A stretch of DNA of 64,000 bases from Neoconidiobolus thromboides FSU 785 (taxonomy: Eukaryota; Fungi; Entomophthoromycota). The stretch spans positions 248,001-312,000 of the forward strand of contig MU626259.1 of NCBI GenBank assembly GCA_025603075.1. Direction: 5' to 3'. Positions 41,762-64,000 of this stretch are shown in pieces. Position 1 is the stretch's first letter. Each line of letters begins with the position of its first letter. A program made the translations under genes and the position numbers. The notes beneath the pieces were generated by a model that saw only the letters and a program-made list of their open reading frames with translations, was not told the origin of the DNA and ran no database searches.

Positions 41762-41866
41762 ATATCGGAATGTATTTTTTTGTTTAAGAATTGTCCTAAC
41801 AATCTTTTCACTCAAATAGTGCTTAAAAAATAGAAAAGTAATAAAACTAAAAAAATATCCTCATAT
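41762..41866 (+). mobile_element. MITE-like family A copy
   Basis: tgtattttttgtttaagaattgtcctaacaatcttttcactcaaatagtgcttaaaaaatagaaaagtaataaaactaaaaaaatatcctcatat. Confidence 0.8.
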
Positions 41867-42202
41867 TTTGGATCTTCATAGATCGAAAGATATCTAAGTA
41901 GAAACTATATACAAGTGTTACGCTATAAGCAGTATTTTCTCAAATTTCATACTTAAACGCGGCCACTAAATTCTATGTCAGTATGTGTAAATCTATATGG
42001 AGGAAATCTCTTTTGGTTTAATGATTTTTACATTTTCTAAACACTACTAAACTGAAAAAATAACAAATTTCTTAAAAGAACATTCCTGTATTAAATATTA
42101 TAAAAGTTTTATTTACAGTTTATATAAATAGAACAAATTACTTATGGTGCAAAATTGTTGAATTTATGTTTGAAGTTAACTATTGATAATAACAATAACT
42201 CC

Positions 42203-42308
42203 ATATGGGAGTGTTTTTTTTGGTTTCATTACTTTTCCACTTTTTAAGCGCTATTTGAGCAGAAAGATTGTTAGTAAAATTCTTAAACAAAAAAATACAT
42301 CCCCATAT
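42203..42308 (-). mobile_element. MITE-like family A copy (well preserved)
   Basis: atatgggagtgttttttt...aaaaatacatccccatat; both termini intact. Confidence 0.88.
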
Positions 42309-42561
42309 GCTAATTAAAGTATTAAACATATATTGCTTTTGTAAAAAAATAAAATTAAAACTCGTAATTATCTTTAAGCTTTAGCTTTTGATAAAATGAT
42401 GTTATTGGTTGTAATAGTAAATATTTTTTATAGTAAAAAATAAAAGCTACATAAAAATAAAAAAGATAATATTAAAATTTTTACTATTGTTATCTTTTTT
42501 CGAAAAACATTTATTTACAAAATGATTTAATATTTCTATATATTTTCAAATTCAAAATTAA

Positions 42562-42667
42562 ATATGGACGATATATATTTTTATTTAAGGATTTTGCTAA
42601 CAAATTTTCCACACAAATAGCACTTACAAGATGGAAAAAGTGAAGTCAAGAAAAATACTCCTATATG
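42562..42667 (+). mobile_element. MITE-like family A copy
   Basis: atatggacgatatattttt...ttttccacacaaatagcacttacaagatggaaaaagtgaagtcaagaaaaatactcctatat. Confidence 0.75.
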
Positions 42668-42744
42668 TAATTGTGAAAAGTATAAATATCTAGTTTATTA
42701 TTAGCAAAATTTTGGTTAATCTTAGAATAATAGACAAGTTCAAT

Positions 42745-42843
42745 ATATGGGGATGTTTTTTTGGTTTCATTACTTTTTCCATTTTTTAGCACTATTTAAG
42801 CGGAAAAATTGTTAGTAAAAATTCAAAAACACAAAAATACATG
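42745..42843 (-). mobile_element. MITE-like family A copy, about 30 bp upstream of tRNA-Gln
   Basis: atatggggatgtttttttggtttcattactttttccattttttagcactatttaagcggaaaaattgttagtaaaa...aaaaatacat. Confidence 0.85.
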
Positions 42844-42875
42844 ATGATATTTTAAATTGGATTTCCCTCGCAAAC

Positions 42876-42947
42876 GGATTCATGGTGTAATGGTTAGCAC
42901 CCAAGGTTTTGATCCTTGTAATCCGAGTTCGATTCTCGGTGGGTCCT
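42876..42947 (+). tRNA. tRNA-Gln(TTG)
   Basis: Cloverleaf: acceptor GGATTCA/TGGGTCC, A box TGGTGTAATGG, anticodon arm CAAGG-TTTTGAT-CCTTG, T arm CCGAG-TTCGATT-CTCGG, followed by a T-run terminator. Confidence 0.95.
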
Positions 42948-43117
42948 TTTTTTACTTGATCTAATAACTGCACTTTAAATTATTATCATATTTAAAAATA
43001 CTTATTTAAATGGTTTTAAATATACAATCTTTTAATAAAAGCTAAAGTCTCTTAGCTTTACCAAAAATAATTCAAATATCTAGTTTTAATTTGATACTTT
43101 AAAATATCAAATTTAAT

Positions 43118-43270
43118 AGAAATTCCCAGATTAACAAGGCTTTTACTAATATAACCTATATATTTATATTAATCAGAGTTGTAGTATATAAATATGTATT
43201 TTTATAAAATTTTATTAAAAATGTTCATTACTAATTGCTTTGTATCCAACACTGAAAGCCTTCTATTAAA
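43118..43270 (+). repeat. Dispersed repeat family B, partial copy
   Basis: aaggcttttactaatataacctatatatttatattaatcagagttgtagtatataa aligns with 54540-54600 and with the reverse complement of 44565-44625. Confidence 0.7.
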
Positions 43271-43296
43271 TAAATAGCTGCATAAAAGTGTAAAAT

Positions 43297-43655
43297 ATCA
43301 CTTTGTCAGCCCTATGATTGATTATAACATAAAAATCAATCTCAAGCTTCTATTTTGATTTAATATGAGAATTCCTACTATGTAATTCTAAAGGACATTA
43401 TCTCCCCATTTTGATATCGATACTTGTTGGTGTATAAAAGAGATTTCAGAACATAGTAACTCAAGGCTTTTTAATAGTAATTATGGAGATTTCATAGTAG
43501 TATTGTCTACTTTATTTGCCTTACATAGTCCGTAGCCTATTACGTGCTATTCTTCACAATTCAAGTCTATCTTAGCTACACAAACTAAGACCTTTTGACT
43601 TACGGCTAGTCAATCAACTGAAAACTCCTTTCAACTCCAGCCACTGAGCACCAGA
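43297..43655. repeat. Degenerate relic of the family C element seen intact at 63316-63990
   Basis: Shares aaatatcactttgtcag, atgagaatt, cattttgatat, aggctttttaa and cctattacgtgctattcttca...caagtctatcttag...aaactaagacc with the reverse complement of 63316-63800. Confidence 0.8.
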
Positions 43656-44454
43656 TTTCATGAAAGCTTTTGTTTAAAAAGTTTATAAAAATTGACATAT
43701 AGGCAGATACAAAAAACTATTTTAAATCTCAAAAGTTTTTATATTATATGTGTAAAAAAAACTTACAAAATAAATAATATTTTAAAAATTGACTTTAATT
43801 TTTTTGTTGAACATTATAAAAAAATATAGTCAATAAGCATCTTACAAATCTTTTATAGTAGAAAAGTAGTTTTGAAGCATTAAATAAAATAAAAAATAAC
43901 AATTAACTAGTTTCAAAATTTGGGATTTTATTTTTGAGAATAGTAAAGTTAAGAACTTAACTATTAATAACAAAAAATAGATACAATTTTAAAGATACAA
44001 AAAAAACATAAAAATATAAACATAAAAAACGATAAAGATACAAAGTATTAAAAAATAGTTACATTTTATTAAACATAATAATAAACTATATTACTATTAA
44101 ATATCTGATTGATAGAAAGATTCTAATTAAAGTTATAAAGTCTATAAAAGTATAGAAAAATTAAAAGATTAACCCCAGTTTACCTTACAAAAATGAGATA
44201 ATTTAAAAGTTTCAACATTTAATAAACAAGTGAATAGTTTATTAAATAATATAAACTAATTATTGTATACTAACACCATTTAAGTTACCAATAGCCAAGT
44301 TAATGAATAATGAAAAATAAATAGTTACAGTAACAAATAAAAATTACTATTATTATATTGCTTGTATCATATAAGGATGGTTAAGTATAGTTTTGGGACT
44401 AATCACTTCCTCCTATCCAGCTATTCATTAATTCAGTAATATATTAATAATGTA

Positions 44455-44773
44455 ATTATAAAATTAAAATTGTTTATTTATTTGATAGTAAATCTGCGAT
44501 GTTGGGTATAAAGTAGTCAATAATAAACATCTCACAATAAAGTTTTATAGGAATGTATATTTATACACTACAACTTTGATTAATATGAATATATAGGTTA
44601 TATTAGTAAAAGCCTTATTAATCCTAGAATTTCGGCTAACTTATGATATAAATTATAATAAAGTAATTTAAAACTATGTCGAACACTTTTGGTTTTTAAT
44701 AAAGGATTTGTTAAGTCTTAAAACTTAGAATATTTAAAAATTGGGTAGAAATGAAACCAATTTGGACATCCCC
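44455..44773 (-). repeat. Dispersed repeat family B copy
   Basis: Near-identical reverse complement of 54401-54708 over about 300 bp; ends in ggacatcccc, the same terminal word as family A. Confidence 0.85.
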
Positions 44774-44859
44774 TAATAAAAGTTTTTTCATTTCAGTATC
44801 TTATGATTTCTTTCGATTTTATGTTGAATAAAAAGCGAAAAAATAGTAAAAAAAAGCTA

Positions 44860-44975
44860 TAGAGATATATTTTCTTGTTTGAATTTTACTAACAATCTTT
44901 CCATTTTTTAAGCGCTATTTGAGTGGAAAGATTGTTAATAAAATTCTTAAATAAAGAAATACATCCCCTTATATA
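44860..44975. mobile_element. Rearranged fold-back copy of MITE family A
   Basis: Two left halves in inverted orientation; arms 44881-44903 and 44924-44946 pair at 22 of 23 positions. Confidence 0.75.
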
Positions 44976-45430
44976 GTATCTTTTAAACTTCTTAATTATT
45001 AAAATTTTTATATCACTTACTCAGTTTTGTTTACAACTGTATTAAATCATAAAGCACAAGAATAAGATTTTATCTAATTTTTAGTTAATGAGGAGAAACG
45101 AAAACTTCACAACCAATCTAAAAGAGTTTAAAAGTAAAATTACATTACTTTCTAAGTCATGCAACAGCTTTGAATGCATTACCTCAACAAGCTGACCTTG
45201 GATTAAATCTAAACCTCGGCATATATGTAATAAACCCCATCAATCATTTACTAAATAAATTTAATTACTGTATTTTAATCTTGTAATCAGGAAGAAACTA
45301 GTAACCAAATGACTTAACTTGACTTAGGTCAGATCGTATTACATGCGTCATCAGCGTATAAAAAAACTAAAATAAGCTAATTATTAAGATATAAAAGCCA
45401 AAAAAAAGTTCACAGTCTTTAGTTTAAAAT

Positions 45431-47826
45431 ATGCTCAACTTAAAACTAATTACTCAGCCTTTAAACAGTTACCAACCGATGGCTGGCAACGATGGAGATG
45501 ATATTCCCAACAAAGTTGAAAGGAAAACTTTATCGCCCTTTTCACAAGCTAAACTCCCATTTGTTTTAAGTCAAAAGTTCCTTCATATTTTACCATCACT
45601 GGCCATAGCTTTTGTACTACTTTGTTCCTCAGCAGCTATGAATGCCTCAATAATTGATAGTACACCACATCAATCTCAAGCTCAAGCTCTCGGCCAATAT
45701 ATAGACCCGCTTAAAGGCTTTGATAGCATACCGAATTCTGACTCCCTTCGCTCACATTTGAAGTACATCACTCAAAGCGTACATATTGCTGGTAAAGGCA
45801 AGTCACTTGCTGAGTGGTACGCCAAAAAACTACAGTCTTACGGCCTTAAAACCGAGATCGTCAAATATTATCCTTACTTAAACTACCCTTCCAAACGTCG
45901 ATTAGCAATCGTTTCCCCACCAGCCTTAAAATATGAAGCCAAACTAGTTGAAGACGTAATAGATGAAGATCCCACCTCCCTTGACCCAAATGCAGTACCA
46001 ACTTTTCATGGGTTATCAGCAAATGGTAATGTAACTGCTGAATTAGTGTATGCTAATTATGGTACATGGGAGGATTTTAAAGTACTCAAATCAAACAATG
46101 TAACTGTAAAAGGGAAGATCGCTTTGGTTCGATATGGTAAATGCTTTCGTGGCCTCAAATTACGCGCTGCTGAGCTCAATGGTGCGGTTGGTGTGCTCAT
46201 ATACTCAGATCCTTTGGATGATGGTGAAAACTTAGGTGATGTGTATCCAAAGGGGCCTTACCGCCCAAGCAGTGGGGTACAAAGGGGTACTGTAAGTTAC
46301 CTTAGCTTATCACCTGGAGACCCGCTGACACCTGGAGTTGCTGCTACGAAGGATGCCAAGCGTATTTCATTAGAAAAATCCAAAATTCTACCCAAAATCC
46401 CATCTTTACCAATCTCATATGGAGATGCTTTACCTTTATTAAAAGCTTTAGTAAGTGAGGGTAAACAAGTTGATAAATTGGGGTCTGATTGGACAGGTGG
46501 TTTAAAGGTTAGTTATTGGACTGGACCATCTAGAGCTAAGGTTAATTTAATCAATATTGTAGATGGCGGTATACAAACTATATACAACGTAATTGCTACC
46601 ATTCCGGGAGAGAAAGAAAGAAATAAACAAATAATTGTAGGCAACCACCGAGATGGTTGGGTATATGGAGCTAATGATCCAGGATCTGGCAGTAGTATGA
46701 TGTTAGAAGTAGCACGTACACTTGGTTCATTATTAAAAGGTGGGTGGCGACCAAAAAGAACTATTAAACTGTGTAGCTGGGATGCAGAGGAGTATGGATT
46801 GATTGGATCAACCGAATGGGTAGAAGACTTCTCTAAAAAATTAAGTAAAGAAGCCATTGTTTATATCAATGTCGATGCTTTTGAAGGTACTCAGTTTTCT
46901 CCTAGTGGTACCCCTAGTTTACTGAAATTAGTTAAAAATATTACTGCACAAGTCAAAGATCCTCATGGTAATGGTACTATCTATGACTCTTGGTATAAGG
47001 ACACTAAAGGGAAAACAGAATTACAAGGATTGGGATCAGGTAGTGATTACACTCCATTTTACCAGCATCTCGGTATCTCCTCTTTGGACCTTAAATTTTA
47101 TTCAAAAATCGGCTCCGGGGTGTATCATTCTAACTACGATTCGTTTCATTTTGTAGATAAGTTTGGTGACCCAGGGTTCAAAATATATCTTGCAATGACT
47201 CAAATTGTAGGAAAATTATTGATCACTTTGGCTGATAAGCCACTCGTTTCCTTTCACCTCGCTCATTATGGATCAAAATTAACGGAGTATATTGATAAGG
47301 TGGACCAAAGCCTTAAGGAAGAAGCAAAAAATAAACTTAATTTACTTGCTTTTCGTAAGGCAGTATCTGAGTTTACTACTGAGTGCAAAAAGATTGATGA
47401 TAAAGCAGCTTTATTAAATAATAAATTAAGTACCGATAAAAAAGAAGGATGTCAAAAAGATAATAACATATGCATTAATGAATTAAATTGGGTCAATAAT
47501 AAGATGATTTATTTGGAACGCAAAATGCTTGATCAAAAAGGTAACATGAATATAAATAAAAGATCATTTGTTAATTCAGTTACCAAGGTATCGAGGGAAG
47601 AGAATTCTATAAGCACTTTGTCTATGCGCCAGGACTTTGGGCTGGGTAAATTAAATTTTTATTATCGGACCTTTATTTAATACTTTATAGGTATGGTTCA
47701 CAAGTATTTCCTTCTTTAAATGAAGCTTTGGAGGCCAACGATTTTAAAAAAACTAACGAAGTGGTATGTAAGTATACGGATCTCATAAATGAAGCAACAG
47801 CTTTTCTTAAATCGGAAAGTTTATGA
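45431..47826 (+). CDS. Glutamate carboxypeptidase II-like M28B peptidase (PA + M28 + TfR dimer domains; Vps70/Tre-like), 3 exons
   Basis: N-terminal signal anchor, PTFHGLSANGNVTAELVYANYG, SGVQRG, GNHRDGW...GANDPGSG, SWDAEEYGLIGSTEWVE, GSGSDYTPF, YHSNYDSF. Introns 47541-47587 and 47646-47690 give YKHFVYAPGLWAGYGSQVFP and a stop at 47826. Confidence 0.95.
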
Positions 47827-48053
47827 GTATCAAAGTTGATTTATTTGAATTCAAACAAAATAAATTTTTTAGTTCTTAAATTATACCTATTTTTCAAATA
47901 ATATTGATAATAATAAGTATGTTATATAAATGCGTTTTTAATCCGCCATAGGACATTACTGTTTATTACATATTTAAACAGACAGAGGTTTATTGAAACC
48001 AGTTGTTTTTTAAAACATCTCGTTCATTTATAAAAAGCAATAAATTAAAAACC

Positions 48054-48159
48054 ATATGGGGCTGTTTTTTTTGATTTCATTATTTTTCCGTTTTTTAAGC
48101 ACTATTTGAGTGGAAAATTTGTTAGTAAAATTCTTAAACACAAAAATACATGCTCATAT
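48054..48159 (-). mobile_element. MITE-like family A copy
   Basis: atatggggctgttttttttg...gcactatttgagtggaaaatttgttagtaaaattcttaaacacaaaaatacatgctcatat. Confidence 0.88.
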
Positions 48160-48313
48160 TAAAATCATCAAACTTCTATTGAATATACATATACTTTAGT
48201 TTAAAGCGATAATAAAACTTTAGCTTCTAATAATAAAATTTATTTTATCAAAAAAAACTATCAATTTAATTTATATATTAATTAGAGTTTATTTGACTTA
48301 ACTGTAAGCTCAA

Positions 48314-50050
48314 TTAGGTACATTTAAAAGGTTTAAAAGCGCCACACCAATATGTAGAAGTTGTATGTTCATAATGTAATACAGCGTTATTATTGTTATC
48401 ATTATTTGTATCACTAATAGTATTATTGAGCGGGTTATTAATCTCATTTACAGCATTAAAATTATCAAGGTAATTATTGGCATAACTCATGGTATAACGA
48501 TTGAAGCGTGGTAAGGCAACTGAATTATTACTAGTTATTGATAAATCACTAAAAAAAGAATCCCTTATTTTATAATTATTTTTTGGACTATCCTGGGGAT
48601 AAAAATGGCTAGAAATAGTATATATATTTCTATGCTGTCTTAATCTATGATTATAAATGATATTATCACTGTCAGTTCTTTGTCTCATGTCAATATTATT
48701 GCTAGTGGTACATTCAATATTATTAGTATTATTTAATATACTATTATCATTGACATTTAATTTGTATTTCTTGGCTCGGTTTAAATAAGAATCAGTAGTT
48801 GGATCAGAGGTCCTTGGTTTATCCAGTTTTAATAAATTTTTGTTGATGAAATTATTAAATGTCGAGTTGAAAGCTGGCAATGGTAGATTAAAGTTAAATA
48901 AAGCCTTATTATCATCGACGGTATCATCTTCGTTAATAAGATTATTTCCTACAGCTACATTCGTGTCATTGGTACCAGTACTGTTACTTGTACTATCACT
49001 GTTGCTATCGAATACTGGTTCAATAGTATGGTTCAATATTATACTTTTCAATAAAAAATAATAGAATTGAAGGGCTGTAAATAAATAATTGTGGTGATTG
49101 AAATAAACTAAATTAACTAGTAAGAACAATATCTTCAACCAATAATCATATAAATAAACGAAATGAAATTCACTTGTTAGTAAATAAATTGAAGAATTAT
49201 TTAGTATGATTCTGAGTGTGTTATTGAACATGAAATAAATGATTAACAAAGTAGATAACGTTATTAGTATTATCAATTGTATCCTTCTTAATAAAATAAT
49301 TGTCTTCCTATTCATATTCATATTATTAACTTCGTTCTTATCTATTTTGTTATTATTGATATCTACTTTAATAAAATTACTCTCATTTAAAAACTCATTA
49401 CTTAAATTATTTAGTGAATATCTCTGCCATCTTTTGGGTGGATCGGGGAATTGATGAAAAAGTATTGTAGTACGATTGCTATGGATATTACTATTGTATT
49501 TCTTATTAAATATCCTTAGTACTTTTTTAAATAAATTATATACAAATACGACTAAATAGATAGATAAAGTTAATAAATTTAAGCTATAAATCCCATATTT
49601 GAATCTCTTTAATATATCATTGTCATTGTTCACATGATTAATATTACAATAGTAATATTGATTATTAAAGTTGTAATAAGAGTTAAAGTTGCGAGTGTTA
49701 TTAGTATTAAATAACAGGGATGAAATATTGACTATAAAGTGGGACAATAATAATAGCAAAAATAATAATTTATATATAGCACTCTTAGTCATATAGATTA
49801 AGTTTACTACTAAAATCAATTCAAATATTATACTATTCAAAAATTGGTTTAACTCACATATTCCTATTTCCTTATAATTTAAATATTGGAATGTTATATT
49901 ACTAAGAATATAACTGATACTTAATACTATTACTCCTATCGCTATTTTGCTGTAGTTATTATTTATATTGCTTATACTGTTATATAAAATTGGGATTGAA
50001 ATAAAAAAAGACAGAATCAAGGAAACCCAAAGTAAAATAGCGATATCCAT
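48314..50050 (-). CDS. Seven-transmembrane GPCR-like protein with Asn-rich loop and tail
   Basis: Seven hydrophobic segments by eye, Cys at the start of TM3 (GICELNQFL) and in the TM4-TM5 loop (YYYCNIN), long TM5-TM6 loop, long N/S/T-rich C-terminus. Confidence 0.6.
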   Translation of the reverse strand: MDIAILLWVSLILSFFISIPILYNSISNINNNYSKIAIGVIVLSISYILSNITFQYLNYKEIGICELNQFLNSIIFELILVVNLIYMTKSAIYKLLFLLLLLSHFIVNISSLLFNTNNTRNFNSYYNFNNQYYYCNINHVNNDNDILKRFKYGIYSLNLLTLSIYLVVFVYNLFKKVLRIFNKKYNSNIHSNRTTILFHQFPDPPKRWQRYSLNNLSNEFLNESNFIKVDINNNKIDKNEVNNMNMNRKTIILLRRIQLIILITLSTLLIIYFMFNNTLRIILNNSSIYLLTSEFHFVYLYDYWLKILFLLVNLVYFNHHNYLFTALQFYYFLLKSIILNHTIEPVFDSNSDSTSNSTGTNDTNVAVGNNLINEDDTVDDNKALFNFNLPLPAFNSTFNNFINKNLLKLDKPRTSDPTTDSYLNRAKKYKLNVNDNSILNNTNNIECTTSNNIDMRQRTDSDNIIYNHRLRQHRNIYTISSHFYPQDSPKNNYKIRDSFFSDLSITSNNSVALPRFNRYTMSYANNYLDNFNAVNEINNPLNNTISDTNNDNNNNAVLHYEHTTSTYWCGAFKPFKCT

Positions 50051-50383
50051 ACTTCGTTAATATTTTAAAAAAAAGAAAAGGATAAAAATAAAAAGTTTAT
50101 TTTTATAACTATTTGTTTATTTAATATATTTATACTTATTCTTTTTTTTGTTTTTAAATATAAACATAGTAATATATTGATAAACTTCAAGCCTTGAAAT
50201 TTATAATAAAATAAAGCTTATATGCTGCCTTTCTTACTTAATAAAACATGGCATAAAAGTGTCTGTGCTTGAGTCGTCTCAAACTACCAATCAATATTAT
50301 AGAATAAAAATAACTTATGTTTGATTCACTTAGTCCAATTCCAAGGTTCAATGGCCCAATTGATGAGTATTTTAAGTTAGTAT

Positions 50384-50557
50384 CCTCTATTAGATCACTA
50401 TCTATGTTTTAGACGCTTTCATTTAATTTTGTTATTAATGTCTTTTACCTGAATCTAAAAATATAGTATTGTACGTAACCTATATATTCAAGTAAAAGAC
50501 ATTAATAACAAAATTAAATGAAAGCGTCTAAAACATAGATAGTGATCTAAATATAGG
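50384..50557. repeat. Fold-back element with 58-bp perfect inverted arms
   Basis: 50391-50448 is the exact reverse complement of 50492-50549. Imperfect pairing continues inward and outward. Confidence 0.92.
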
Positions 50558-51240
50558 TTTCACATAAATAATTTTGATTATTTATTAAAAGGATGCAAAG
50601 TTATTAGCTGCAAGGGTGAAATTTTATTGTGTACAAAATTAGAGTTTATTTTCGAGTACAGAAACTTTCATGTTGCAGTTCTACACCTTCAGAAATTATT
50701 TTTCGTTAAATTAACTAAAACTATTCGAAAACCTTCGACTAAGCTAGTGTTTAATTTAAGAATATGCTAAGTTGCATGCATTTGCCATTAACTTTTATAG
50801 CTTATTAGACTAACTCAAAGCAAGTAATTGATAAGTCTGGATTGAGTGAGGTCAAACTTAATATAACTAATCTAAGAGTAATGTCGAATTTCTTTGGGTA
50901 AAACAATGCAACTGCAACTGATGATATCAAGACTAATCCAACCTAACCAAACAGCTATTTGTAATACTTAATAAAAATGGAAAATAACTTAATAAATAAA
51001 TTCAGCTTTAATATCGCTTACATAATACTCATTTAAATTCATAAGGATTAAAATGCTTTAATCTATATTTTAAATGACTAATTGCTTCGAATGAAATATT
51101 TATTTAATCTGTTAAACGCCTTGGCATTAATACTAAAGAATGTGAAGCTCCAATAAGCTATCTTATTTTCTTTGGCCACTACATCTATACCAACAAACTG
51201 TCACTCGAAAATATTCAAGCTTTTTTTACAAAAATTTAGG

Positions 51241-51347
51241 ATATGGGAGTGTTTTTTTTGACTTCATTATTTTTTCCATTTTTTAAGCACTATTTGAGTG
51301 GAAAATTTGTTGGTAAAATTCTTAAATACAAAAATACATCCCCATAT
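51241..51347 (-). mobile_element. MITE-like family A copy (well preserved)
   Basis: atatgggagtgttttttttg...aaatacaaaaatacatccccatat. Confidence 0.9.
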
Positions 51348-53717
51348 GAAAGTTTTGTAAACAATATATAGATAACTGCAAATAAACAGAGTAAAAATAA
51401 GTTTGAAATGCTTTATTTAAAATAAATTACTAGGTACGTTTATATCTAGTACGTGAAATAGATGTTAGCCCAAACAAGTTGGAATAAAGTGATGATTTAT
51501 AGTACAAATGCTAAAAAATAAGGTCAGGATAATCAATATCAAATAACTATACGAAGGAGAAGTTGCTGTTACGAGAGTAAAGCAATGAATAAGAATAATA
51601 GAACAAGTTTAATGAAGATTCAATTATCTTAACTGAATGGGAGTAAGAGAGACGGTGATAGTTGAGTAATGTTTACCATTCATTGAATATCCTTTATTTA
51701 GTAAATCTTCGAAGTGGATATCTCTTAATTTTTGATCAATTACTTTTTCAACCTTTTTTTCCTTAAGCAATATCACCTCACTACCACTCAGTTGACTAAA
51801 CTTCTTTATACTATTCATTTTGCTATTTACTTTCCAGCTTATCCTTTTGTTGTCTTTGTCCTGAAATATAACGTAACCCTGTACTTGTTGCATGATTTGA
51901 AATTTTAAAATATAGATTGGTATTAAATTTCGAGTTTACTTTCTTTATATACTTTTATCTTGAAAAAATCACACGGTATTAGAGATGTGAATTGTGATAA
52001 ATAGAATAAAGGAGTTATAAATATCTTTTTATCTCATCTCACAGAGACTTTTATAGTAACAATCGTAAGAAACCTTATTTTCTACAAAATTCTATTCTTA
52101 CCTTACAAAATTAATTTCTTATTTTAGCTGTTTACTTATGATTTAATAACCTTGGTTTTAATCAGTTTTCTGTATAACTTGTTTTTATTTTATAATCATT
52201 ATAATATTTATATATTATATATTATATTACATTATATTATAAATACTACATCTTTATATACCATTTCTTCCGTATTATGTCTCAAATATTATATTGCCGG
52301 AGTTTATATAAAGCAATATTAATACTATTGTCCCAAAGAATGATTTGAACAATAACTCAACTTAATTAATAATGATAAAGTCAAATAAACCCGACAAGCC
52401 AGCTAAAATAGGTAATGCAATTAAAGTTACTAAATCTTTATCAATGGTTTTCAATTGGTTCACTATTAATTTTATAATGTATTAATCTAGAACTTCCTAC
52501 TTCGAATTTTTTTTGTAATTCATTTGATTATCCTATGATATGAATTTGGCCAATTAAAATCGTTGCTTCTTACTATTAATTTTTTTTATAAATTAAAACT
52601 TGCTAATTCGAGCTTAACAAAGTATAAAACGGGATGTTGGTGTTAACATACCCTTACATCCTACCTTTGATTACAAACTTCTATTTCGATTCATTTTTTG
52701 TTGTTTGTGTTATATTACTTTTGATTATTTTATATAATTTATTTCTGTTTAATTTATTTTCTATATGGCTTTTCAAAATTCATTCAAAATATAAGCTGAT
52801 ATAATTTTAAAACACTAGACAAGTCATTTAAACTTAACTATCCCTTAAAGATAACAAATATAAGTAGCTCAAAAATAATAACTATATATAGGGAATATGT
52901 TTTTAAAATTTATATTATTTTAAATAAATTTAGTTTCAACTTTATTAAAGAAATTTATTAGTAATTCATTCTTTAAGCCATACACCATTACTATTAATCA
53001 TTATTTCTCATATTACCGTGTTATCAGGATGGATCATCTACCTTTATTAATAAATTATGGTGATTCACCGTAATGGCCGTTTGGTCATTATTATGTTATA
53101 ATTTATGTTATTAATTGGCGATGATATCAAGACAAGAGAATGAAAGGGAAAAACCTTTGTAAAATATAGGAATTGGCATACTAAGGTTAGAAAAAAATCC
53201 AATTACTATATATAATTAGAAGCTAAATCCTAAAGGTTGATGTTTGATTTATTAATACATTATTAATTTAATTATTATTCATATCTTATTATTAATCCGT
53301 ATAATTTGCCAAGTCATTACCAACTGAGTTTAAGCTTATAAAAGATATGACTTTCAAAGCTATCACCTCAATCCCTTGGATGTAATGTGGGAGGATCTAA
53401 TTAAAACAAAATATGGTTCATGAGAAAAAGTAAGCCGACAACTAATTACAAGGAATAGGAGATTATTTACTAGATCCCTGTTAAAAATAAATCGGCTATA
53501 GTTAATTTAACATAATAGAAGTTAAGCTGTTTACTTCCAAATGCAAAACCCATCTACTCTAAGCCTATTCTAACATCTTTATTTTGCCAATTCCAAAGCT
53601 AACCCAGATCTAAATTATAAGGGTTCAATGTTGACATTAAATTAAAAGTTATGTAATCACTTAGGTAAAGTTTGAATTAAATTTATGACTAAATAAAATC
53701 CGAAGGCGAAAAATAAT

Positions 53718-53790
53718 TGGAGTAGCAGGGTTTCGATCCCCGTGCCCCTCGCATGCAAAGCGAGTACTCTACCGATTGAGCTACTACCCC
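53718..53790 (-). tRNA. tRNA-Ala(TGC)
   Basis: GGGGTAGTAGCTCAATCGGTAGAGTACTCGCTTTGCATGCGAGGGGCACGGGGATCGAAACCCTGCTACTCCA; anticodon arm CTCGC-TTTGCAT-GCGAG; G3:U70 alanine identity pair. Confidence 0.95.
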
Positions 53791-53929
53791 AACTTAGTAT
53801 GAGAAAATAAGCAAAAAATAGTATTTAATATTTTAAATTATTGCAGCTAATGTTAAAAATGTCTTATACTTGTTTTTAGTATATTGGCTAAGATTTAAAA
53901 CTAAGTTACATTTAAATAGAAATATGAGG

Positions 53930-54034
53930 ATATGGCGATGCTTTTTTTTCTTCATTACTTTCTTCATCTTTAGGTGCTGTTTGAGCGGAAAGATTGTTAA
54001 CAAAATTCTTAAACGAAAAAATACATTCCCATAT
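53930..54034 (-). mobile_element. MITE-like family A copy, about 140 bp upstream of tRNA-Ala
   Basis: atatggcgatgctttttttt...gtgctgtttgagcggaaagattgttaacaaaattcttaaacgaaaaaatacattcccatat. Confidence 0.82.
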
Positions 54035-54400
54035 TCAAATTGGTTTCAAAATTTACTTAAATTTGGATTAAGTCCTTAATGGATAATCTGGTCAAATTTA
54101 AAAAGCTTAGTAAAATAAAAAAAATATTAAATTTTGCTATTAATAATAAATTTAATCAAATAATATATAAAGTTTAATATTTTTCTAATAAATATAAGAG
54201 TCTTAAATTTGATATAAGCAAAATTTAGTATGCTTATTTAAAGACAATTAATAATAACGAAATAATAATATTACAACTTATCATAGAAAATATATAAGAA
54301 ATGAAATAAAAATAAGAAGATCTTTTAATAAAAAAAAGTTATAAATTTAGACCATTATAACAAATAAGCTACATTAATATTAAAGTTCAGTGTTTTATAT

Positions 54401-54708
54401 ATATGTTTGAATTGATTTCATTTTTAAATATTCTAAATTTTAAGGACTTAACAAATTCTTTATTAAAAACCGAAAGTATTTGACAGTTTTAAATTACTTT
54501 ATCATAATTTATATAATAAGTTAGCCGAAATTCTAGGATTAATAAGGCTTTTACTAATATAACTTATATGTTGATATTAATCAAAGTTGTAGTGTATAAG
54601 TAAATATACATTCCTATAAAACTTCATTGCGAGATGTTTATTATTGACTACTTTATACCCAACATCGCAGATTTACTATCAAATAAATAAACAATTTTAA
54701 TTTTATAA
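54401..54708 (+). repeat. Dispersed repeat family B copy
   Basis: About 300-bp match to the reverse complement of 44455-44773 (for example gccgaaattctaggattaataaggcttttactaatataac; acccaacatcgcagatttactatcaaataaataaacaattttaatttt). Confidence 0.85.
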
Positions 54709-54718
54709 TACATCATTA

Positions 54719-54817
54719 ATATGAGGATGTTTAGTTTTATTACTTTTTCCATATTTTAAGCACTATTTGAGTGGAAATTTCATTAGTAAATTCTTGAACC
54801 TAAAAATACATCACCAT
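54719..54817 (-). mobile_element. MITE-like family A copy abutting family B
   Basis: atatgaggatgt...tttttccatattttaagcactatttgagtggaaatttcattagtaaattcttgaacctaaaaatacatcacca. Confidence 0.8.
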
Positions 54818-55476: not shown

Positions 55477-56163
55477 TTACAATTTAATTTCAAATAAGGA
55501 GATAATTTTCCTATCTTCAAAATGTAAGGTATTATCAATTGGACATTCCAACAAGTAGCTTGATGTTGTCAAGCCAAAAGTCTCTTGAAGTGAATGGGGT
55601 AAAGGAGAGTTCGAATTACTTGATGAGTTTATATTGCCATCTTTTTTATATGTTGATGAAGCACTACTAGCTTCATTATCGCTAGTAAACCTCTTAATCT
55701 CTAATACATCTTTCTTGAAATAATAATGTTCAGGGATATCAAGTTGCTTTAAGGAGGAATTTCTAGGCCTTAAAAGGTCACAATGTTTTGACTTATCATT
55801 GTATACATAGTTTACTAACTGGAATTTTCTATCATCGATCCCTTGAATTGTATATGTCCTCTTTATTAGATTTGAATATTCATTATTATTCTTATTTTTA
55901 TTTGTTCTCTCATAATAGCTAAAAAAGCCTTTATAATACCTTGATTTTGACCATGATTTACCATCTGTCCAGCGACACATACTAGAACTACTTTCTTCCC
56001 ATACAAAACAAGCCCCTGAATTAATCAATTTCTTTTCATTAGAGTCTAATCTTCGTTTAATTAAACTTAAGTAGCCTAAACGGGATGCCTCGATGATAAT
56101 CAAGGCATCTTTGTAATCTTCAATATAGCCATGAAATAGAGATAATTTTGGGTTAGTTAGCAT
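55477..56163 (-). CDS. Gti1/Pac2 (WOPR) family transcription factor
   Basis: FHGYIEDYKDALIIIEASRLG...RRL...INSGACFVWEE...RWTDGKSWSKSR...Y-x-E and LIKRT...QLVNY...L-x-RP. Confidence 0.92.
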   Translation of the reverse strand: MLTNPKLSLFHGYIEDYKDALIIIEASRLGYLSLIKRRLDSNEKKLINSGACFVWEESSSSMCRWTDGKSWSKSRYYKGFFSYYERTNKNKNNNEYSNLIKRTYTIQGIDDRKFQLVNYVYNDKSKHCDLLRPRNSSLKQLDIPEHYYFKKDVLEIKRFTSDNEASSASSTYKKDGNINSSSNSNSPLPHSLQETFGLTTSSYLLECPIDNTLHFEDRKIISLFEIKL

Positions 56164-58153
56164 TTTTGTATATAATATAATTCTATTAAAGTTTACCGTT
56201 CCTTCTTTTTATAGTTTTTATATTTACCCTAAATAATGTTCGCTGAAACTCAATAGTAACTTTATAATGGCATTACAAGGAATCTAATTGAGTCGAAATA
56301 TGATTTAATAAAATTAACTTAGAAATTCAAAAAATTAAGCTTGTGGAGGTTTTGGTTTAATTATTTATGCAAATTCTTGAACCAGTTCGTTCTGTAAAGC
56401 CTGGATTCTGTATATATTTCTATATGGCTAATTGATATTAGAATAGATAAAATAAAATTAATAATATATGAAACAAAAATTTATTTATTTATTCACTTTT
56501 ATTTGTTTATATTCTCAAGTATACAACAGTAATCAAGTTATAACATTGTATCCTTGTTTAAAATCCAAAAACCTTAATACTCAACAATATTAATAACAAA
56601 ATTGAGCTATTTTTAAACTGCAAACTTAACACTTTGTTATTAATATAAAACCTATTAATTTAAATTTAAATTTAAAATAAAAAATAATCTAAGGCATAGT
56701 TTTAATAAACTATCCGATTGTATGTCAATTATTTTTTAGTTCATAAAAGTCCAAATTCGGAGACGATCTTTAATTAAAAATAGCTGCATTTTTTTTGTTA
56801 AAACAATTTAGTAAAAAATTCTAAAAGTTATATCACCTTATAAAAATTTCCTTGTTTTCGGGATTTTTTAATTAAACTCAATTATTTGCTTAAAGTTAAT
56901 AGTTTATTTTAAAGCCAAGTGATCGAATTTTCCACCTTTTTATTCAATCTTTCATTGTAATGCTAATAATAAATACCGCCGACCATTTCAAATAAATCAT
57001 ATAATTCTTTATAAATATAATTAACCTTAAACGTGTGAAGCCTGGTTTTTAGATTATTTACTTCTATAAGCTATGGTACTATACAAATTAAAGAATAGCC
57101 ACCTAAATAATTTTAATGATATCTATACTTGAAAATATTTTGATATTCAGAGAAATAGCTTTCCATTTGATCTTTTAGTAAAAACAAGAATACTCAAATT
57201 AAACTACTATTTGCCTTAAATAGTAATTTAATCTTTCGTTTTTTTATGCACTATACCTTTTTAACTATTATAAGAGTAATGAATGTAAATACTTCCAAGG
57301 GTTTTATTAACAAAAATTAATCAAATTAAATTATAAAAAATATTTGTATACTCTATCTTAATTGCTTAAAATTTTTATTAGGGTTTAGCTATAACTTGGA
57401 TTGAAGACCAAAAAACTTCAGTTTTGGCATCTAATTTCCATTTACTATCATAGTTTTAGAACTACATTATTTAAACTTTCAACTTTAATTATCCTCTGAG
57501 GCGAATAATTCGAATATATCTATCATGGCCATTATGATACAGTTAACGGATAAAGCTCGAAAGTATTAGCTAATTGAATTAATTTATAATGAAATATATA
57601 GATCAGAAACTCATTTGTTAGCTAAAATTTTACAGCTTTAGCCGTTAACAGCGGGTTTTGGTCATCAAAAATATACTCATATTATTCGATCAAGAGGATA
57701 GTGTTGATATTTTGTAACTACTTTATTATCAGCCCAACTCTAAGGCTATTTTTATTTGATATTTTATTTTCGTATCAAAAGTAGCATAAAATTCGATTCT
57801 AATATTAGCTTATTTTGTTAGTATCTAATACTTCGAATTACTTTACAGGATAGAAAACAAATAAAAATGTTGAAAATTGTCATAAATCCAGATTATATAA
57901 CGGCTTATTATTAATTAGCATTAATTAAAATATAAGCCTTGTATAAGATTTATTAAATAATCATTAACTTTTATAGTAAGATGTCGCATTATCCAAAAAA
58001 ACAAAAACTTACTTACATTCTTAAGAAACTATTTTAGTTAAATCAAATGATTAAACTCCTTCAAGTACTAAAACGACAAAACAATCAAGTTGACGTTTAA
58101 ATAAGCTGTTTTTATTTATTAATTCATTCAATTGTAAAATCCTATCAACTATA

Positions 58154-60272
58154 TCAATTATTCTCCTTTTTTTCAGTATGAGGTTGTTGGATATAACTTT
58201 TCCTTTCCTCCGTTAATTTCCAAGTCTTAGGATACTGCCATTCTAAATTAGACATAGGGAATTCATTAAAACCTAATAACAAAGTTGGAACATTTGTAAC
58301 ATCGCTTTGTATTAAATGGAGCTTGTTTATTTCTGAATCCAGATTAATTTCCATATCCTTGATTTCTTTAATAAATTGATTAATTTTTTGTAATCTTCCA
58401 ATCTCTTTTATTTTTTCATTCTCAGCACCTTTCTGATAACTAAATGCTCCCTCTCTCACTTGACTAAATGCTCTTTTTAACTTATCATTCATATTTAATA
58501 CATCTTCAAGCCTTTCTTCATTATTTTCTACGCTCAAAATACCACTTCCACTAATATATTCTCTGATTGACTCGACTTTATTCTTAATACATTCCAACGA
58601 TGCCCTTTGTTCATCAATATGACTATCCACTTCCTTATTCCCAAATTTACAATAATTCAAAGCATGCTCGGTGAGTTCTAATCCTTTTGTTATTATTTGC
58701 TGCTTAAACTCCGCATGTGCTTTTTTCATTTCATCATACTCACTTAATTCGGATAGATTCATTATTTCTATACCATTTATTCTAGAAATTTTATTCTTTA
58801 TCGCTCTTTCTAAGCTATGAGACATTTCTAATGCCTTTTGTTTTAACTCTTCACTTTGTTTTCTATACTCATCTAAACTTTGATCGTTCATTTCTTCTAC
58901 CTTTTTAAAAACTACTTCCAATTGAGTTTGGGTTCTATAAATTTCTTTTCTAAACTCTTCAACCTTTACTTTTGTAATTTCCCTTTGTTTTAGATTTTCC
59001 TCTTTTATCTTCGCCCTCACCTCTTCCAATTTAGTAATATTCAAACCTATGCCACTCACAATATTATTATCCATCCTATTTAATTTAGAACTCATAACTT
59101 CCCTTTGCCATTTTACCTAATAAAGTTAAGTTTTTTAATTAAAATAAACTTAGTTTGTTACCATATCTCTATATGCTTTGTTCTCCACCTCTTTCTTCCT
59201 CGTAAGATCTAAAACCTTTTCCAACTGATCTTTCATATGGTTTAACAAATCGCCACTCTTATTTTTAATTTCAGAGTTCATCTCGCTCATATACCTATTT
59301 ACTTGTCCATTATGAAATTCAATATCGGCCTCTAAATCTTTGATCTCTTTTAATATACCATCATCATTATTTCTTCCATCCTTTTCTTCGATACCTTGGC
59401 ACTAAAATGTTATTAATTGACTCTTTAATAAGGTTAATTAAACTTACCATTTCCAATCCATACTCAATTTCAGCTACTTTAGATTCAAAGAAACTCATCT
59501 GATTACAATAAGTTTCTTGATAATCATTCATACTATTTATGATCTTTTCAATTTCTTGTTTCCGATTACCTTTAGTCTCTTTTTGGCCTAAGCTCCTATT
59601 TTTAGTAGAATCTCCTTTAAATAAATTAAATTATTAAAATATTAATAACTAGATATTTTACCCAAATATTTTTTAATAGCTTTTATCCTTTCATCCCTGT
59701 CCTTCACTTCTTTTGCTAGACTGTCTGCTATCGAATGCAACTCTGATTCATTTTTCTTATATTGTTCAATAATCTTTTGAGAAGCGAACAGTTTTGTTGT
59801 TAGCTTTTTAATCTCTTCATTCTTTACTTTCAGTATGCGTTCTTCTTTTAGGAATAATTTTTGAGCATGCTCGTATTCTTGCTTCAAATGATCATAACTC
59901 TGTTTCAACCTATTATCTGAAACACCACTCAATTCTTTGGCAACTAAATTATCATTTGAGTAGTTGGACTTATTTCTACTTACTGCTTTGTTTTCGCTTT
60001 TGAGTTTCTAGATTAAATTGATACTGAATTCTAATTATGCATAAATCTTCTTACTTTTAATTCTTGTTTTAGTTGACTGTTCTCCTCATTTAACATTTTG
60101 TTCTCTTCTCTTGCAAGTTCTCTTTCATTTTTGAGTTTCTAGATTAAATTAATTTTATTTTCTAATCATGTATATATTTGCTTACATTGTAATCTTGTTT
60201 CAGAATATTATTTTCCTTTTCCAAGACTAAAAGCCTAGAGCTTTCATCCTTTTGTGAATTCGTGCCATCCAT
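58154..60272 (-). CDS. Multi-exon long coiled-coil protein
   Basis: ATG at 60272 (MDGTNSQKDESSRLLVLEKENNILKQDYN|). ORFs 59642 and 58154 are linked by exons flanked by GT/AG. E/K/L-rich heptads throughout. Exact exon count not fully resolved. Confidence 0.75.
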
Positions 60273-60627
60273 ATTTCTCCTTATGTTGATTAGTATTATA
60301 TTATTTTAAAAATAAAAGTAATCACTTCAAAAAATAAATCAAACCCTTTGTTTATTTTCAACTTTGAAGTATTCGATTTTTAGCAAATTAAACTCCATAA
60401 TCATTGAATGAAATTTTCATCATTATAAAATAGGCTAAAATAATCACTAAAATAAACGATATATAAAATAATGATAAATATACAACAAAATATTTCATTT
60501 TTATTAAAATAAATTAAATCTAAAGATTCCTATTAACATCTGCTAGTTCATTGGTTAGTTAACTCCAGAACAAAAGCTGTCAAAGACACTGCTTAACTAA
60601 ATAATACACTAAAATTAGATAATAAAA

Positions 60628-62000
60628 CTAGAGCCAATGGCTTAGTTTTTCACATAATAACTCATACGTCAGTAAAGTTAAGGTGGTACTTGGTACCGTC
60701 CTTAATAAATTAGTAGGAAACCCTTTATAAAAAGCAGAAGCTCCTTCTTCTTTAAATATAGTGAGACAGGCATGTCTCACCCCGAGATATTTGTACGGTG
60801 GTTTCGTCTGATTTTGTAATCGAGTTCGAACCACTTCATGAGGATATGTACATAGAGAAGCGGCCATAATGGAAATAGATGAGGCCATTAATATCGTTCC
60901 TTTAGCTATTTTTCCATCATTGTTATCATTAGGAGCTTGAAATGGGTTATTAAATTTTAGAATCTCTTAAATATCATTAATTTTACCAAATTTCACTTTC
61001 AGTCTTTCGTAAAGTGGAAATTGAACAATGACATGAGATACACCTATTAAAGAAGGTACTAACCCTCTATAAAATCCAGAAATTCCTTCTTGTAACCATA
61101 TTTTTTTAAAGGCATCTATGGTGCCATTATAACAATAAACGGTTGTTTTTGATTGTGTCTTTTAAATGGTTAATATAAACAAATTTTATTTAAGTTCATT
61201 ACCATAATTCGAGTTTTTATAACCCATAATGGTGTTGTTGCTATGGTCGAAACACAACCTGCTATCATGGCAGAAATCATATGTACAAATGAACTATTGA
61301 CTTCTTTGCCTAAAGTTAAAAATTAACTAATAAAAATTACAATTAGATAAGGTTACTAACCAAGTAAATTAGTCGACCAAGGTTTTAAGGCATGATAGCA
61401 TGAAAAATAGATTGCCCAAGATGGTAAATACCCTAATATTGTTGGATTTAATCCTCTATATAATCCATTGATTCCTTCTTCTTTAAATATAACCCTTAAT
61501 GGCGCTAAAAAAGATCAATACTAATTTAGAATCCATTTTGAAAAAAGTACCTATAGCACCTTTATAGTAGGTGGAACCGGGTATAACTTTACTTTGATTT
61601 TGTAATCGAGTTTTAACTACATCTAATGGACAAGTTACTATGGATGCTACTAAACCAGCACCGGCTCCAGCTAACGTATGTTTGATTTGTTCACCCCTAT
61701 ATCTATTTTAATTAACTAACTAGGCTAATAATTATTTATAACTAACTACTTTAGAATTCCTTCTGTATTTGGGGGATTGACTTTCATCTCAATATTAAGA
61801 TCTTTTTTTTCTAAACTTTAGTTCATTTAATTGGATTAATTGGATTAGTTTTAAGTCCTTCTTACCAATTTCTACACCCTAGCATATACCATGCCATATC
61901 CTTATCCTTTTATACACCTTCTTTTTTACCTCTCTATTATTTACTTGTTTAACTTTTTTATTTCTATTACTTTCAACCAATTCTTCGTCACTTTTAAAAA
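60628..62000 (-). CDS. Mitochondrial carrier, NAD+/folate subfamily (Ndt1/Yia6, SLC25A32-like), multi-exon; 5' end unresolved
   Basis: Three carrier repeats: AGAGAGLVASIVTCPLDVVKTRLQ, GLYRGLNPTILGYLPSWAIYF, TTPLWVIKTRIM, LIGVSHVIVQFPLYE, TYPHEVVRTRLQ, YKGFPTNLLRTVPS. Confidence 0.9.
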
Positions 62001-62265
62001 TCTAAATTTAAAATTTGTTAACCTTTATGCTAATCATAGGAATGTTGGATCTTAAATAGTCCAAGCCATTGGCTTAAAATAGAAAATTCAAGCTAATTAG
62101 ACCAATCATTACCTCATTTTAATTCTACTTTTAAAAACAATTTAACACAACACAGCAGTCACAAGCTTCAATTTGTTCTAAGGACAAAATTTTACAATAA
62201 ATAATGTGTCCAATGATTTGAACTTGATTTTTTAGTTAATAAAAAATGTGAAATTTAAAATAATT

Positions 62266-62347
62266 TGTCAACTGTGGGGTTCGAACCCACGCCTCTCTCG
62301 AGATTGCATCTTAAGTGCAACGCCTTAGACCGCTCGGCCAAATTGAC
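62266..62347 (-). tRNA. tRNA-Leu(TAA)
   Basis: GTCAATTTGGCCGAGCGGTCTAAGGCGTTGCACTTAAGATGCAATCTCGAGAGAGGCGTGGGTTCGAACCCCACAGTTGACA; long variable arm; anticodon arm TTGCA-CTTAAGA-TGCAA. Confidence 0.96.
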
Positions 62348-62531
62348 TTTATTACATATAAGAAACCAAAAATTACTAATAAATGTATTAAAATTTCTGG
62401 AACATTTTTAAATAGATTGAGCATTTGAATCTTAAGCTAAGAAAGGAAAAAAAATTCACTAATTAGATAATTAAATTTTTGATACAGCTGCTAAAGTGAA
62501 GAGTGAAAAGCTTAGAGTTATTTGGACGAGT

Positions 62532-62636
62532 ATATAGGAGTTTTTTTGGCTTCATTACTTTTTCCATTTTTAAGCACTATTTGAGCAGAAAATTCGTTAG
62601 TAAAACTCTTAAGCGCAAAAAAACATCCCTCTATAT
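62532..62636 (-). mobile_element. MITE-like family A copy, about 185 bp upstream of tRNA-Leu
   Basis: atataggagtttttttggcttcattactttttccatttttaagcactatttgagcagaaaattcgttagtaaaactcttaagcgcaaaaaaacatccctctatat. Confidence 0.85.
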
Positions 62637-62659
62637 TTTTTAATTATATAATATAAAAT

Positions 62660-62766
62660 ATATGGGGATGTATTTTTGTATTTGAGGATTTTACTAACAA
62701 ATTTTCCATTTAAATAGCGCTTAAAAGACGGAAAAAATAATGAAGCCAAAAAAAACATACCCATAT
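62660..62766 (+). mobile_element. MITE-like family A copy (inverted partner of the preceding copy)
   Basis: atatggggatgtatttttgtatttgaggattttactaacaaattttcc...gaagccaaaaaaaacatacccatat. Confidence 0.9.
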
Positions 62767-63209
62767 GTTTCCTAAAAAATTTACTAACTTTTTTTATTTA
62801 GTAAAATATAAAGTTACGTTCATAATGATAAAATAACAAAACTGATGGTTGATAATCTTTATATTACATATAGTAACTATTTTTATTTAAGAACATAGCT
62901 TTTTATGACATAACTAACTTTTAAATATTATACCTATCCTTAGTTTTTTATTATTTTATTATTTTATTATTATGAATGTAACTTTATATTCTGTTAGATA
63001 GGTTTTATTTTTGTTTTTTATACACTTCTTTAATATAGTTGTTATAAACTTTTTCTCAAACTTTTGGCTTTTTATAGTATAAACCAATTAATTTTTAAGT
63101 GTAAAGTTTTATAAAAATTTAAATATTGTTGTTATTTTTTATTATTGTTTTTTATTTTGAAAAGTTTGTAAAAATGAAGTTTTAAATATATAAAATAAAG
63201 TAAATAGTA

Positions 63210-63315
63210 ATATAGGGGTGTTTTTTTTGGCTTCGTTATTTTTCCACCTTTTAAGCGCTATTTGAGTGGAAAAATTGTTAGTAAAATTGTTAAACACAAA
63301 AATACATCCCCATAT
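63210..63315 (-). mobile_element. MITE-like family A copy
   Basis: atataggggtgttttttttggcttcg...aaacacaaaaatacatccccatat. Confidence 0.9.
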
Positions 63316-64000
63316 GATATCTGTGGAATCTGACACTGAGTGATTGGAGTCAATAACAGCTATTACCTAGTTGACTATAGTATAAGCTGAGAGGTCTTAG
63401 TTTATGTGACTAAGATAGACTTGGATTATGAAGAATAGCACGTAATAGGTTACAAGCTATATAAAACAAATAGAATAGACAATACTAATGTAAACCTACG
63501 TAAAATACTATTAAGAAAACTTAGTGGCTTTATTAAATGTTCGAGATATCAGGGAATAATTCAGTTAAAAAGCCTCGAACTATACCCTGTAAACTCTTTT
63601 ATACTCTGAAAAGTATAAATATCAAAATGAGAAGATAATATTTTTTGGGATGGAGCTAGAAATTCTCATAGCAAATCAAACTAAGAACGTAGGATTGATT
63701 TTCTCTGAGCTCAAGAACACAACAGCTTAGGCGATTGTTATGCTATAATTAACCATGGGACTGACAAAGTGATATTTCACACTACAGACTATGTAAGACA
63801 AATATAATAGATTTTACATTAGTATTGTCTATTCTATTTGTTTTATATAGCTTGTAACCTATTACGTGCTATTCTTCATAATCCAAGTCTATCTTAGTCA
63901 CATAAACTAAGACCTCTCAGCTTATACTATAGTCAACTAGGTAATAGCTGTTATTGACTCCAATCACTCAGTGTCAGATTCCACAGATATCATATGGGGA
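63307..64000. mobile_element. Large fold-back element (family C core) with perfect inverted repeats of at least 188 bp, cut by the window edge
   Basis: 63307-63494 is the exact reverse complement of 63813-64000 (checked base by base). The 318-bp spacer has no ORF in the track. The last 10 nt begin another family A copy. Confidence 0.93.

Follow-up and report, generated by a model that had tools for sequence, protein, structure and literature searches.

tRNA Genes and MITE Copies in the Window

The window considered here, a stretch of 64,000 nucleotides from contig MU626259.1 of the fungus Neoconidiobolus thromboides FSU 785, contains three tRNA genes and 16 copies of a miniature inverted-repeat transposable element (MITE), family A. 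The window is AT-rich (~26% G+C), and within it the copies are piled up on the 5′ side of every tRNA gene. The association of family A with tRNA genes is real in independent data from the same genome, where it reaches no farther than about 120 bp, occurs on both sides of the gene, and is modest. The window, striking as it looks, makes this small effect appear larger than it is.

The three tRNA genes are the full yield of ARAGORN and Rfam scans of the 64-kb window; a fourth lies past its end. Positions are those of the window.

42876–42947, + strand: tRNA-Gln(UUG) (ARAGORN; Rfam RF00005, 58.7 bits)
53717–53791, − strand: tRNA-Ala(UGC) (ARAGORN; Rfam, 58.5 bits)
62266–62347, − strand: tRNA-Leu(UAA) (ARAGORN; Rfam, 59.1 bits)
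Window-equivalent 65018–65099, − strand: fourth tRNA, Leu(UAA), past the window end (ARAGORN)

Repeat finding, followed by a hidden Markov model (HMM) built from the copies, gave 15 family A copies in the window. A refined HMM, run with nhmmer, gave 16, the last of which crosses the window end.

15338–15443, − strand: copy distant from tRNAs (nhmmer 75.4 bits)
16590–16697, − strand: copy distant from tRNAs (88.2 bits)
41759–41870, − strand: copy 1005 bp 5′ of tRNA-Gln (81.9 bits; in all four sequencing runs compared below)
41994–42092, + strand: decayed copy 783 bp 5′ of tRNA-Gln (30.8 bits; first HMM E = 0.0025)
42203–42308, + strand: youngest copy, 563 bp 5′ of tRNA-Gln (112 bits); 98-bp element at 42207–42304, with ATAT flanks at 42203–42206 and 42305–42308
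42562–42669, − strand: copy 206 bp 5′ of tRNA-Gln (72.7 bits)
42741–42852, + strand: copy 23 bp 5′ of tRNA-Gln, its proximal end degraded (78.9 bits; sequence inspected)
44859–44975, + strand: copy 1.9 kb 3′ of tRNA-Gln (75.3 bits)
48050–48161, + strand: copy between two open reading frames (ORFs), away from tRNAs (102.4 bits)
51238–51350, + strand: copy 2.4 kb 3′ of tRNA-Ala (102 bits)
53926–54038, + strand: copy 134 bp 5′ of tRNA-Ala (84.1 bits)
54717–54817, + strand: copy 925 bp 5′ of tRNA-Ala (66.7 bits)
62529–62637, + strand: copy 181 bp 5′ of tRNA-Leu (85.7 bits)
62657–62771, − strand: copy 309 bp 5′ of tRNA-Leu (98.4 bits)
63207–63319, + strand: copy 859 bp 5′ of tRNA-Leu, where it forms an inverted duplication's left arm (109.9 bits; blastn)
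63988–64000, − strand: start of a copy ~1.64 kb 5′ of tRNA-Leu that runs on to window-equivalent 64100 (102.1 bits in the extended segment)

The initial annotation described a pile-up on the 5′ side of all three genes, and within the window the HMM scans bear this out: 10–11 of the 15–16 copies lie within 1.7 kb upstream of a tRNA gene, and the side flips with the strand of the gene for tRNA-Gln (+), tRNA-Ala (−), and tRNA-Leu (−). The absence of copies within 1.7 kb downstream also holds, the nearest 3′-side copies being 1924 bp from tRNA-Gln and 2369 bp from tRNA-Ala, with none for tRNA-Leu 62266–62347. The four copies reported upstream of tRNA-Gln become five with a weak, decayed one at 783 bp, whose state accounts for the lower count. 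Within 1 kb upstream of the window tRNAs there are 10 insertions as against 1.8–2.0 expected (P < 0.0002), under nulls in which intervening copies are excised and insertions are reassigned at random to non-ORF positions, to AT-only 4-mers, or to ATAT sites. At the fourth gene, tRNA-Leu 65018–65099 (−), the pattern is the opposite, with three copies 294–917 bp away in the 3′ direction and no copy within the 1.4 kb of 5′ flank that is available.

Anatomy and Mobility of Family A

Alignment of 69–98 copies defines an element of 98 bp that is bounded by GGGGRTGT...ACAYCCCC and has a near-palindromic core, and its short terminal inverted repeats (TIRs) are conserved over the whole of this alignment. 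The 4 bases outside the termini form direct repeats, in most cases ATAT, with ATTT, TTAT, or TATT found on both sides of single copies. Such repeats point to a 4-bp, AT-only target site duplication (TSD). Sola2 elements make AT-rich 4-bp duplications of the form AWWT, including ATAT and ATTT (PMC3627910). Judged by its termini and flanks, family A is a nonautonomous cut-and-paste element with the signature of Sola2-type transposons, and its partner would presumably be a Sola2-type transposase. The short TIRs, the AWWT 4-bp TSD, and a clean empty site are shared with the Sola2 DNA transposons and MITEs (Bao, Jurka and Kapitonov 2009; Bao and Jurka 2013, PMC3627910); a bias toward tRNA flanks, in contrast, was not encountered for Sola in the literature searched.

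The empty site was found at the youngest copy. The insertion at 42203–42308 is present in run X1, the likely source run, and absent from three public DNA runs, X2, X3, and X4, which carry two other organism labels. In these three runs, contigs join 42200 to 42303 with exactly 102 bp (42201–42302) missing, that is, the 98-bp element and one ATAT. The empty site identifies this copy as an insertion polymorphism and the family as recently mobile. Two further copies in the genome are 100% identical to it, and it is a presence/absence marker between isolates. The remaining five copies around tRNA-Gln are found in all four runs.

Family A is abundant. In an assembly of 24.6 Mb in 799 contigs, a core pattern of 78% sensitivity has 5,609 matches, with none for the reversed control, which gives ~7,200 copies; the palindromic core, 46% sensitive, has 3,850 sites as against 150 for the control, which gives ~8,000. 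The copy number is thus ~7,000–8,000, or ~3% of the genome. Terminal patterns such as CCCCATAT were not kept for counting, as they pick up only ~25% of the ends of elements.

Short-Range Excess at Independent tRNA Genes

A sequence sample of 301 kb (1.2% of the genome) holds 44 tRNAs and 98 MITE copies. With the window segment excluded, 40 tRNAs and 77–80 copies in 235 kb make up an independent sample, to which the counts in this section refer unless stated otherwise. Expectations were obtained by redrawing sites within each locus among non-ORF sites, after excision of intervening copies. Three choices of site were used (every non-ORF position, 4-mers of A and T alone, and ATAT), with ORF masks of 60, 100, and 150 amino acids, and the results hold across all of these nulls and masks.

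Between 60 and 120 bp upstream there are nine copies as against 1.6–2.1 expected (P ≤ 0.0002), an enrichment of about 5-fold, and over the first 300 bp upstream 19 copies as against ~8 (P ≤ 0.001). The first ~20 bp upstream hold almost no insertions, and few are seen out to ~60 bp. On the downstream side, five copies lie within 60 bp, at 16–54 bp, where 1.3–1.7 are expected (P = 0.008–0.03); the count over 0–300 bp downstream, nine as against ~7, is not significant. Taking either side within 120 bp, there are 18 copies where ~6.3 are expected (P < 0.0002).

Two features of the window do not extend beyond it. The first is 5′ specificity: tRNAs with at least one copy upstream and downstream number 9 and 8 within 120 bp, 14 and 9 within 300 bp, and 16 and 18 within 1 kb. 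The second is the upstream pile-up on a kilobase scale, since there is no enrichment at 300–1000 bp upstream, where eight copies are found and ~13 expected. The reading given in the initial annotation is borne out in part, in that copies are associated with tRNA genes in a position-specific way, but strict specificity for the 5′ side does not hold.

The copies near tRNAs arrived separately. Spacers between copy and tRNA are unrelated from one locus to another, so these are independent insertions rather than duplicated flanks. Orientation relative to the tRNA is random (9 same and 11 opposite in the sample; 6:6 among the genome-wide pattern hits described below). None of the 44 tRNAs examined is interrupted by a copy. 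Copies in the hot zone do not differ in age from the rest, with median identities to the consensus of 85.4% and 86.3%, respectively.

The initial annotation offered, as one of its two readings, that these repeats are selected as chromatin elements flanking tRNA genes. Nothing speaks for this idea: the hot zone is occupied at only ~10–25% of tRNAs, copies show no preferred orientation, and one of those upstream of tRNA-Gln is absent in other isolates.

A Genome-Wide Replicate

The genome contains ~290 tRNAs in total. For a count on this scale, the palindromic MITE core (46% sensitive, four false hits in 301 kb) was located at set distances from the B-box GGTTCRANNCC, in 61-nt bins. This B-box occurs in 27 of the 30 tRNAs of the first sample and at 438 genomic sites, ~264 of which are judged true by reversed-pattern controls. 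Two downstream artifacts caused by the palindromic B-box of tRNA-Leu, one locus on duplicate contigs, and two non-MITE hits were removed or flagged. An identical sequence of tRNA and flank is present at G000:C187:64–313 and G000:C236:28908–29157, which suggests duplicated contigs or haplotigs and hence a slight inflation of genome-wide counts.

Successive bins hold 3, 12, 7, and 7 hits upstream and 6, 6, 3, and 8 downstream, as against ~4.4–5.3 expected per bin from the non-ORF density of the core. The peak bin, which covers about 50–120 bp upstream, had been picked on the strength of the first sample and was then counted genome-wide. Its 12 hits represent a 2.3–2.7-fold excess (P about 0.002–0.02, the lower value being a Poisson estimate at a mean of 4.4), and 11 of the 12 loci lie outside the sequence sample. 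Among upstream hits within 0–170 bp, 15 of 22 fall at 59–118 bp; downstream hits are flat.

Could the association be spurious, with the window a chance extreme and the short-range excess an artifact of post hoc bins and a small sample? The bins were indeed set after the data were viewed, per-tRNA presence is symmetric, and the genome-wide totals for 0–240 bp amount to just 1.1–1.6 times expectation. Copies also cluster everywhere: 46 have a neighbor within 300 bp where 28 are expected, and among copies more than 1.5 kb from tRNAs, 14 have a neighbor within 500 bp where 6.7 are expected (P = 0.01). Against this, the excess within 120 bp on either side persists under three ORF masks, though that statistic is also post hoc, and the peak bin defined in the sample gives 11–12 hits at other loci as against 4.4–5.3. 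An absence of any real association is thus very unlikely.

Tethering to the Polymerase III Machinery

A sharp upstream peak invites comparison with retroelements that are targeted to genes transcribed by RNA polymerase III (Pol III). A transposase that binds TFIIIB, TFIIIC, or a polymerase subunit could send some insertions to fixed distances from tRNAs, as happens with Ty1, Ty3, TRE5-A, and DGLT-A. In 7 of the 40 independent tRNAs the proximal end of a copy lies 71–96 bp upstream. Combining the sample with the hits of the genome-wide count places 12 of 42 upstream distances at 60–80 bp. The excess persists under the ATAT-only null, and many tRNA families are involved. Yet tethered retroelements differ from family A, ~95% of whose copies are over 1 kb away from the nearest tRNA, and the excess is two-sided, with copies within 120 bp downstream of eight tRNAs and upstream of nine. 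A polymorphic insertion, of the kind the initial annotation proposed to map, was found, but this sole demonstrably recent insertion (42203–42308), 563 bp from tRNA-Gln, is outside the hot zone. Active tethering is accordingly improbable, and the initial suggestion of a Pol III-targeted DNA transposon in the manner of Ty3 or TRE5 is not supported.

The scale of the effect can be put in numbers. There are ~1.35 copies per tRNA within 1 kb on either side as against ~1.05 expected locally, so that with ~290 tRNAs some 5% of the family lies within 1 kb. The excess over the local null amounts to about 1% of all copies. Family A is a generalist of AT-rich noncoding DNA that integrates at AWWT sites, and it is not dedicated to Pol III genes.

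As to the nucleosome periodicity raised in the initial annotation, pooled upstream distances appear to form two groups, at ~60–120 bp and 180–220 bp, with a trough at 120–180 bp, an arrangement reminiscent of nucleosome-patterned Ty1 integration. Numbers are small, however, and the second group, which centers on ~185–205 bp, consists in part of copies stacked behind a first one (C332, C391). It is conceivable, though unlikely, that a Sola2-type transposase reads the Pol III complex or positioned nucleosomes flanking tRNA genes, giving Ty1-like peaks at −60 to −120 and −180 to −220 with a trough between them. Such a preference would be partial and superimposed on integration into AT-rich DNA at large. 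If true, this element would be the first DNA-transposon counterpart of retroelement targeting to tRNA genes.

Retention or a Tolerant Edge

Differential survival offers another account. Insertion might be unbiased at AT-rich sites, with tRNA-adjacent copies being the least harmful and copies in Pol II promoters, untranslated regions, and introns being purged. The nulls treat all non-ORF DNA as neutral and thereby overstate the neutral space; the excess is two-sided and just outside the functional tRNA gene unit; and of the six copies around tRNA-Gln, five are common to all four runs. The targeting of tRNA genes in compact genomes is, moreover, usually explained by their being a "safe haven" (PMC5006619). 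Retention by itself, however, predicts a broad plateau, whereas the observed peak appears narrow, with a deficit at 300–1000 bp upstream; nor are the hot-zone copies older than others, as their identities to the consensus attest. That retention alone accounts for the data seems rather doubtful.

On balance we lean toward an explanation in which accessible, tolerated AT-rich DNA at both edges of the Pol III unit, rather than tethering, makes a hot spot. The edges would lie beyond the presumed TFIIIB/promoter zone on one side, with proximal ends ~60–120 bp upstream, and beyond the terminator on the other, ~16–54 bp downstream. A stably occupied, nucleosome-depleted tRNA gene would expose AT-rich DNA to the transposase. 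Insertions in the first ~60 bp upstream would be harmful to tRNA transcription and would be purged, whereas insertions at the edges would be harmless and kept, and later copies would land next to them. On this accessible-edge model, the one-sided stacks of two to five copies in the window would be the extreme tail of the process, singled out for being striking.

Hermes, a hAT transposon, inserts in nucleosome-free regions according to papers that cite the original work (Gangadharan et al. 2010, cited in PMC3364938, PMC13273895). The likeness of Hermes in yeast to family A would lie in the proposed mechanism, integration into accessible DNA beside stably bound factors.

Several points weigh against the accessible-edge explanation. 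Chromatin accessibility as the cause is conjectural. Mu and P elements favor open promoters and yet show no excess at tRNA genes (PMC7337890), so a preference for open chromatin need not by itself predict a hot spot at tRNA genes. Hot-zone copies are neither younger nor older than the rest, which leaves insertion bias and differential retention unseparated; the proven recent insertion, located inside an older stack, leaves them so as well. The distance bins were picked after the first sample had been viewed, and the sample covers just 1.2% of the genome. In the replicate the significance is only ~0.002–0.02 and the effect is half the ~5-fold of the sample; over 0–240 bp there are 29 hits upstream and 23 downstream as against ~18–21 expected.

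Relation to Known Systems

Reviews of tRNA-gene targeting name only retroelements, those of compact genomes (PMC5911963, PMC5006619). Family A seems to have in common with Ty1 and Ty3 of yeast and with TRE5-A, TRE3, DGLT-A, and Skipper-2 of Dictyostelium short characteristic distances from tRNAs and a compact genome (PMC5911963, PMC5006619, PMC6101501), and its upstream zone and downstream zone recall the TRE5 and TRE3 elements. Those retroelements, tethered by proteins, have nearly all their copies next to Pol III genes, and each keeps to a given side. Family A is a TIR DNA element that has ~95% of its copies in other places, occupies both sides of tRNA genes as one family, and shows an excess of 2–5-fold.

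In giving no case of a TIR DNA element directed to Pol III genes, the initial annotation overlooks Dada, although Dada behaves differently. Dada elements are DNA transposons associated with genes for tRNA and for small nuclear RNA (snRNA), and they insert at a specific sequence inside them (Kojima and Jurka 2013, PMC3706591; PMC8869645). Family A, in contrast, interrupts none of the 44 tRNAs and makes a 4-bp TSD. The TSD of Dada is 6–7 bp.

For DNA transposons, the literature found describes either Dada, which enters small-RNA genes at a specific sequence, or elements that favor open chromatin in general. In the papers searched, no TIR element was found described as having a hot spot at set distances from the edges of tRNA genes. 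Such a hot spot in a high-copy, still-mobile MITE would give a tractable natural system in which to ask whether Pol III complexes shape the integration of DNA transposons and whether a safe haven arises by targeting or by retention.

Transposase Candidates

The window contains a decayed transposon-protein relic, which was identified by tblastn.

43652–43894, + strand: relic with nine stops, 0.7–0.95 kb 3′ of tRNA-Gln, 51% identical to L019:7861–8235

A genome search with L019:7861–8235 yields at least 162 matches, the relic among them; the frames of some stay open for as many as 566 amino acids. This high-copy transposon ORF has DDD/DDE-like motifs by eye and no match in a Pfam search; it may be a Sola2-like transposase. 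No MITE-like termini were found near it in L019, so the ORF is not linked to MITE ends. A language-model lead, DUF7869, was rejected as an identity for the ORF, with no match in the genome and nothing in Pfam. A TIR-bounded candidate of 1.7 kb at 34537–36253 proved to be a chance match, and repeated ORFs of the sampled loci, considered as transposases, belong to host UDP-glycosyltransferase and tyrosinase families.

Other Repeats and tRNA Genes

A second repeat family, ~300 bp long with copies up to 93% identical, is represented at 43104–43276, 44441–44741, and 54420–54722, and sits 3′ of tRNA-Gln and 5′ of tRNA-Ala. The tRNA flanks in the window thus gather other repeats as well, on both sides, the transposon-protein relic at 43652–43894 included. 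An inverted duplication, 63207–63494 and 63813–64000 (continuing to ~64100), has 97–100% identity over 188–287 bp. It unites a family A MITE with ~180 bp of another repeat in a foldback of ~890 bp on the 5′ side of tRNA-Leu. The spacing of 3,187 and 3,188 bp between the MITE copies at 44872, 48054, and 51241 was considered as a tandem repeat, but none underlies it and the spacing appears to be a coincidence.

The two tRNA-Leu(UAA) genes are on one strand with 2.75 kb between them. Their upstream flanks have only ~35 bp in common, too little for the comparison of the two loci in search of an empty MITE site, which gave none. Elsewhere in the sample, tRNA-Gly(UCC) comes directly after tRNA-Lys(UUU), with zero spacer, at L002:4965–5108 (G000:C50:111915–112058), and this abutting pair may be dicistronic.

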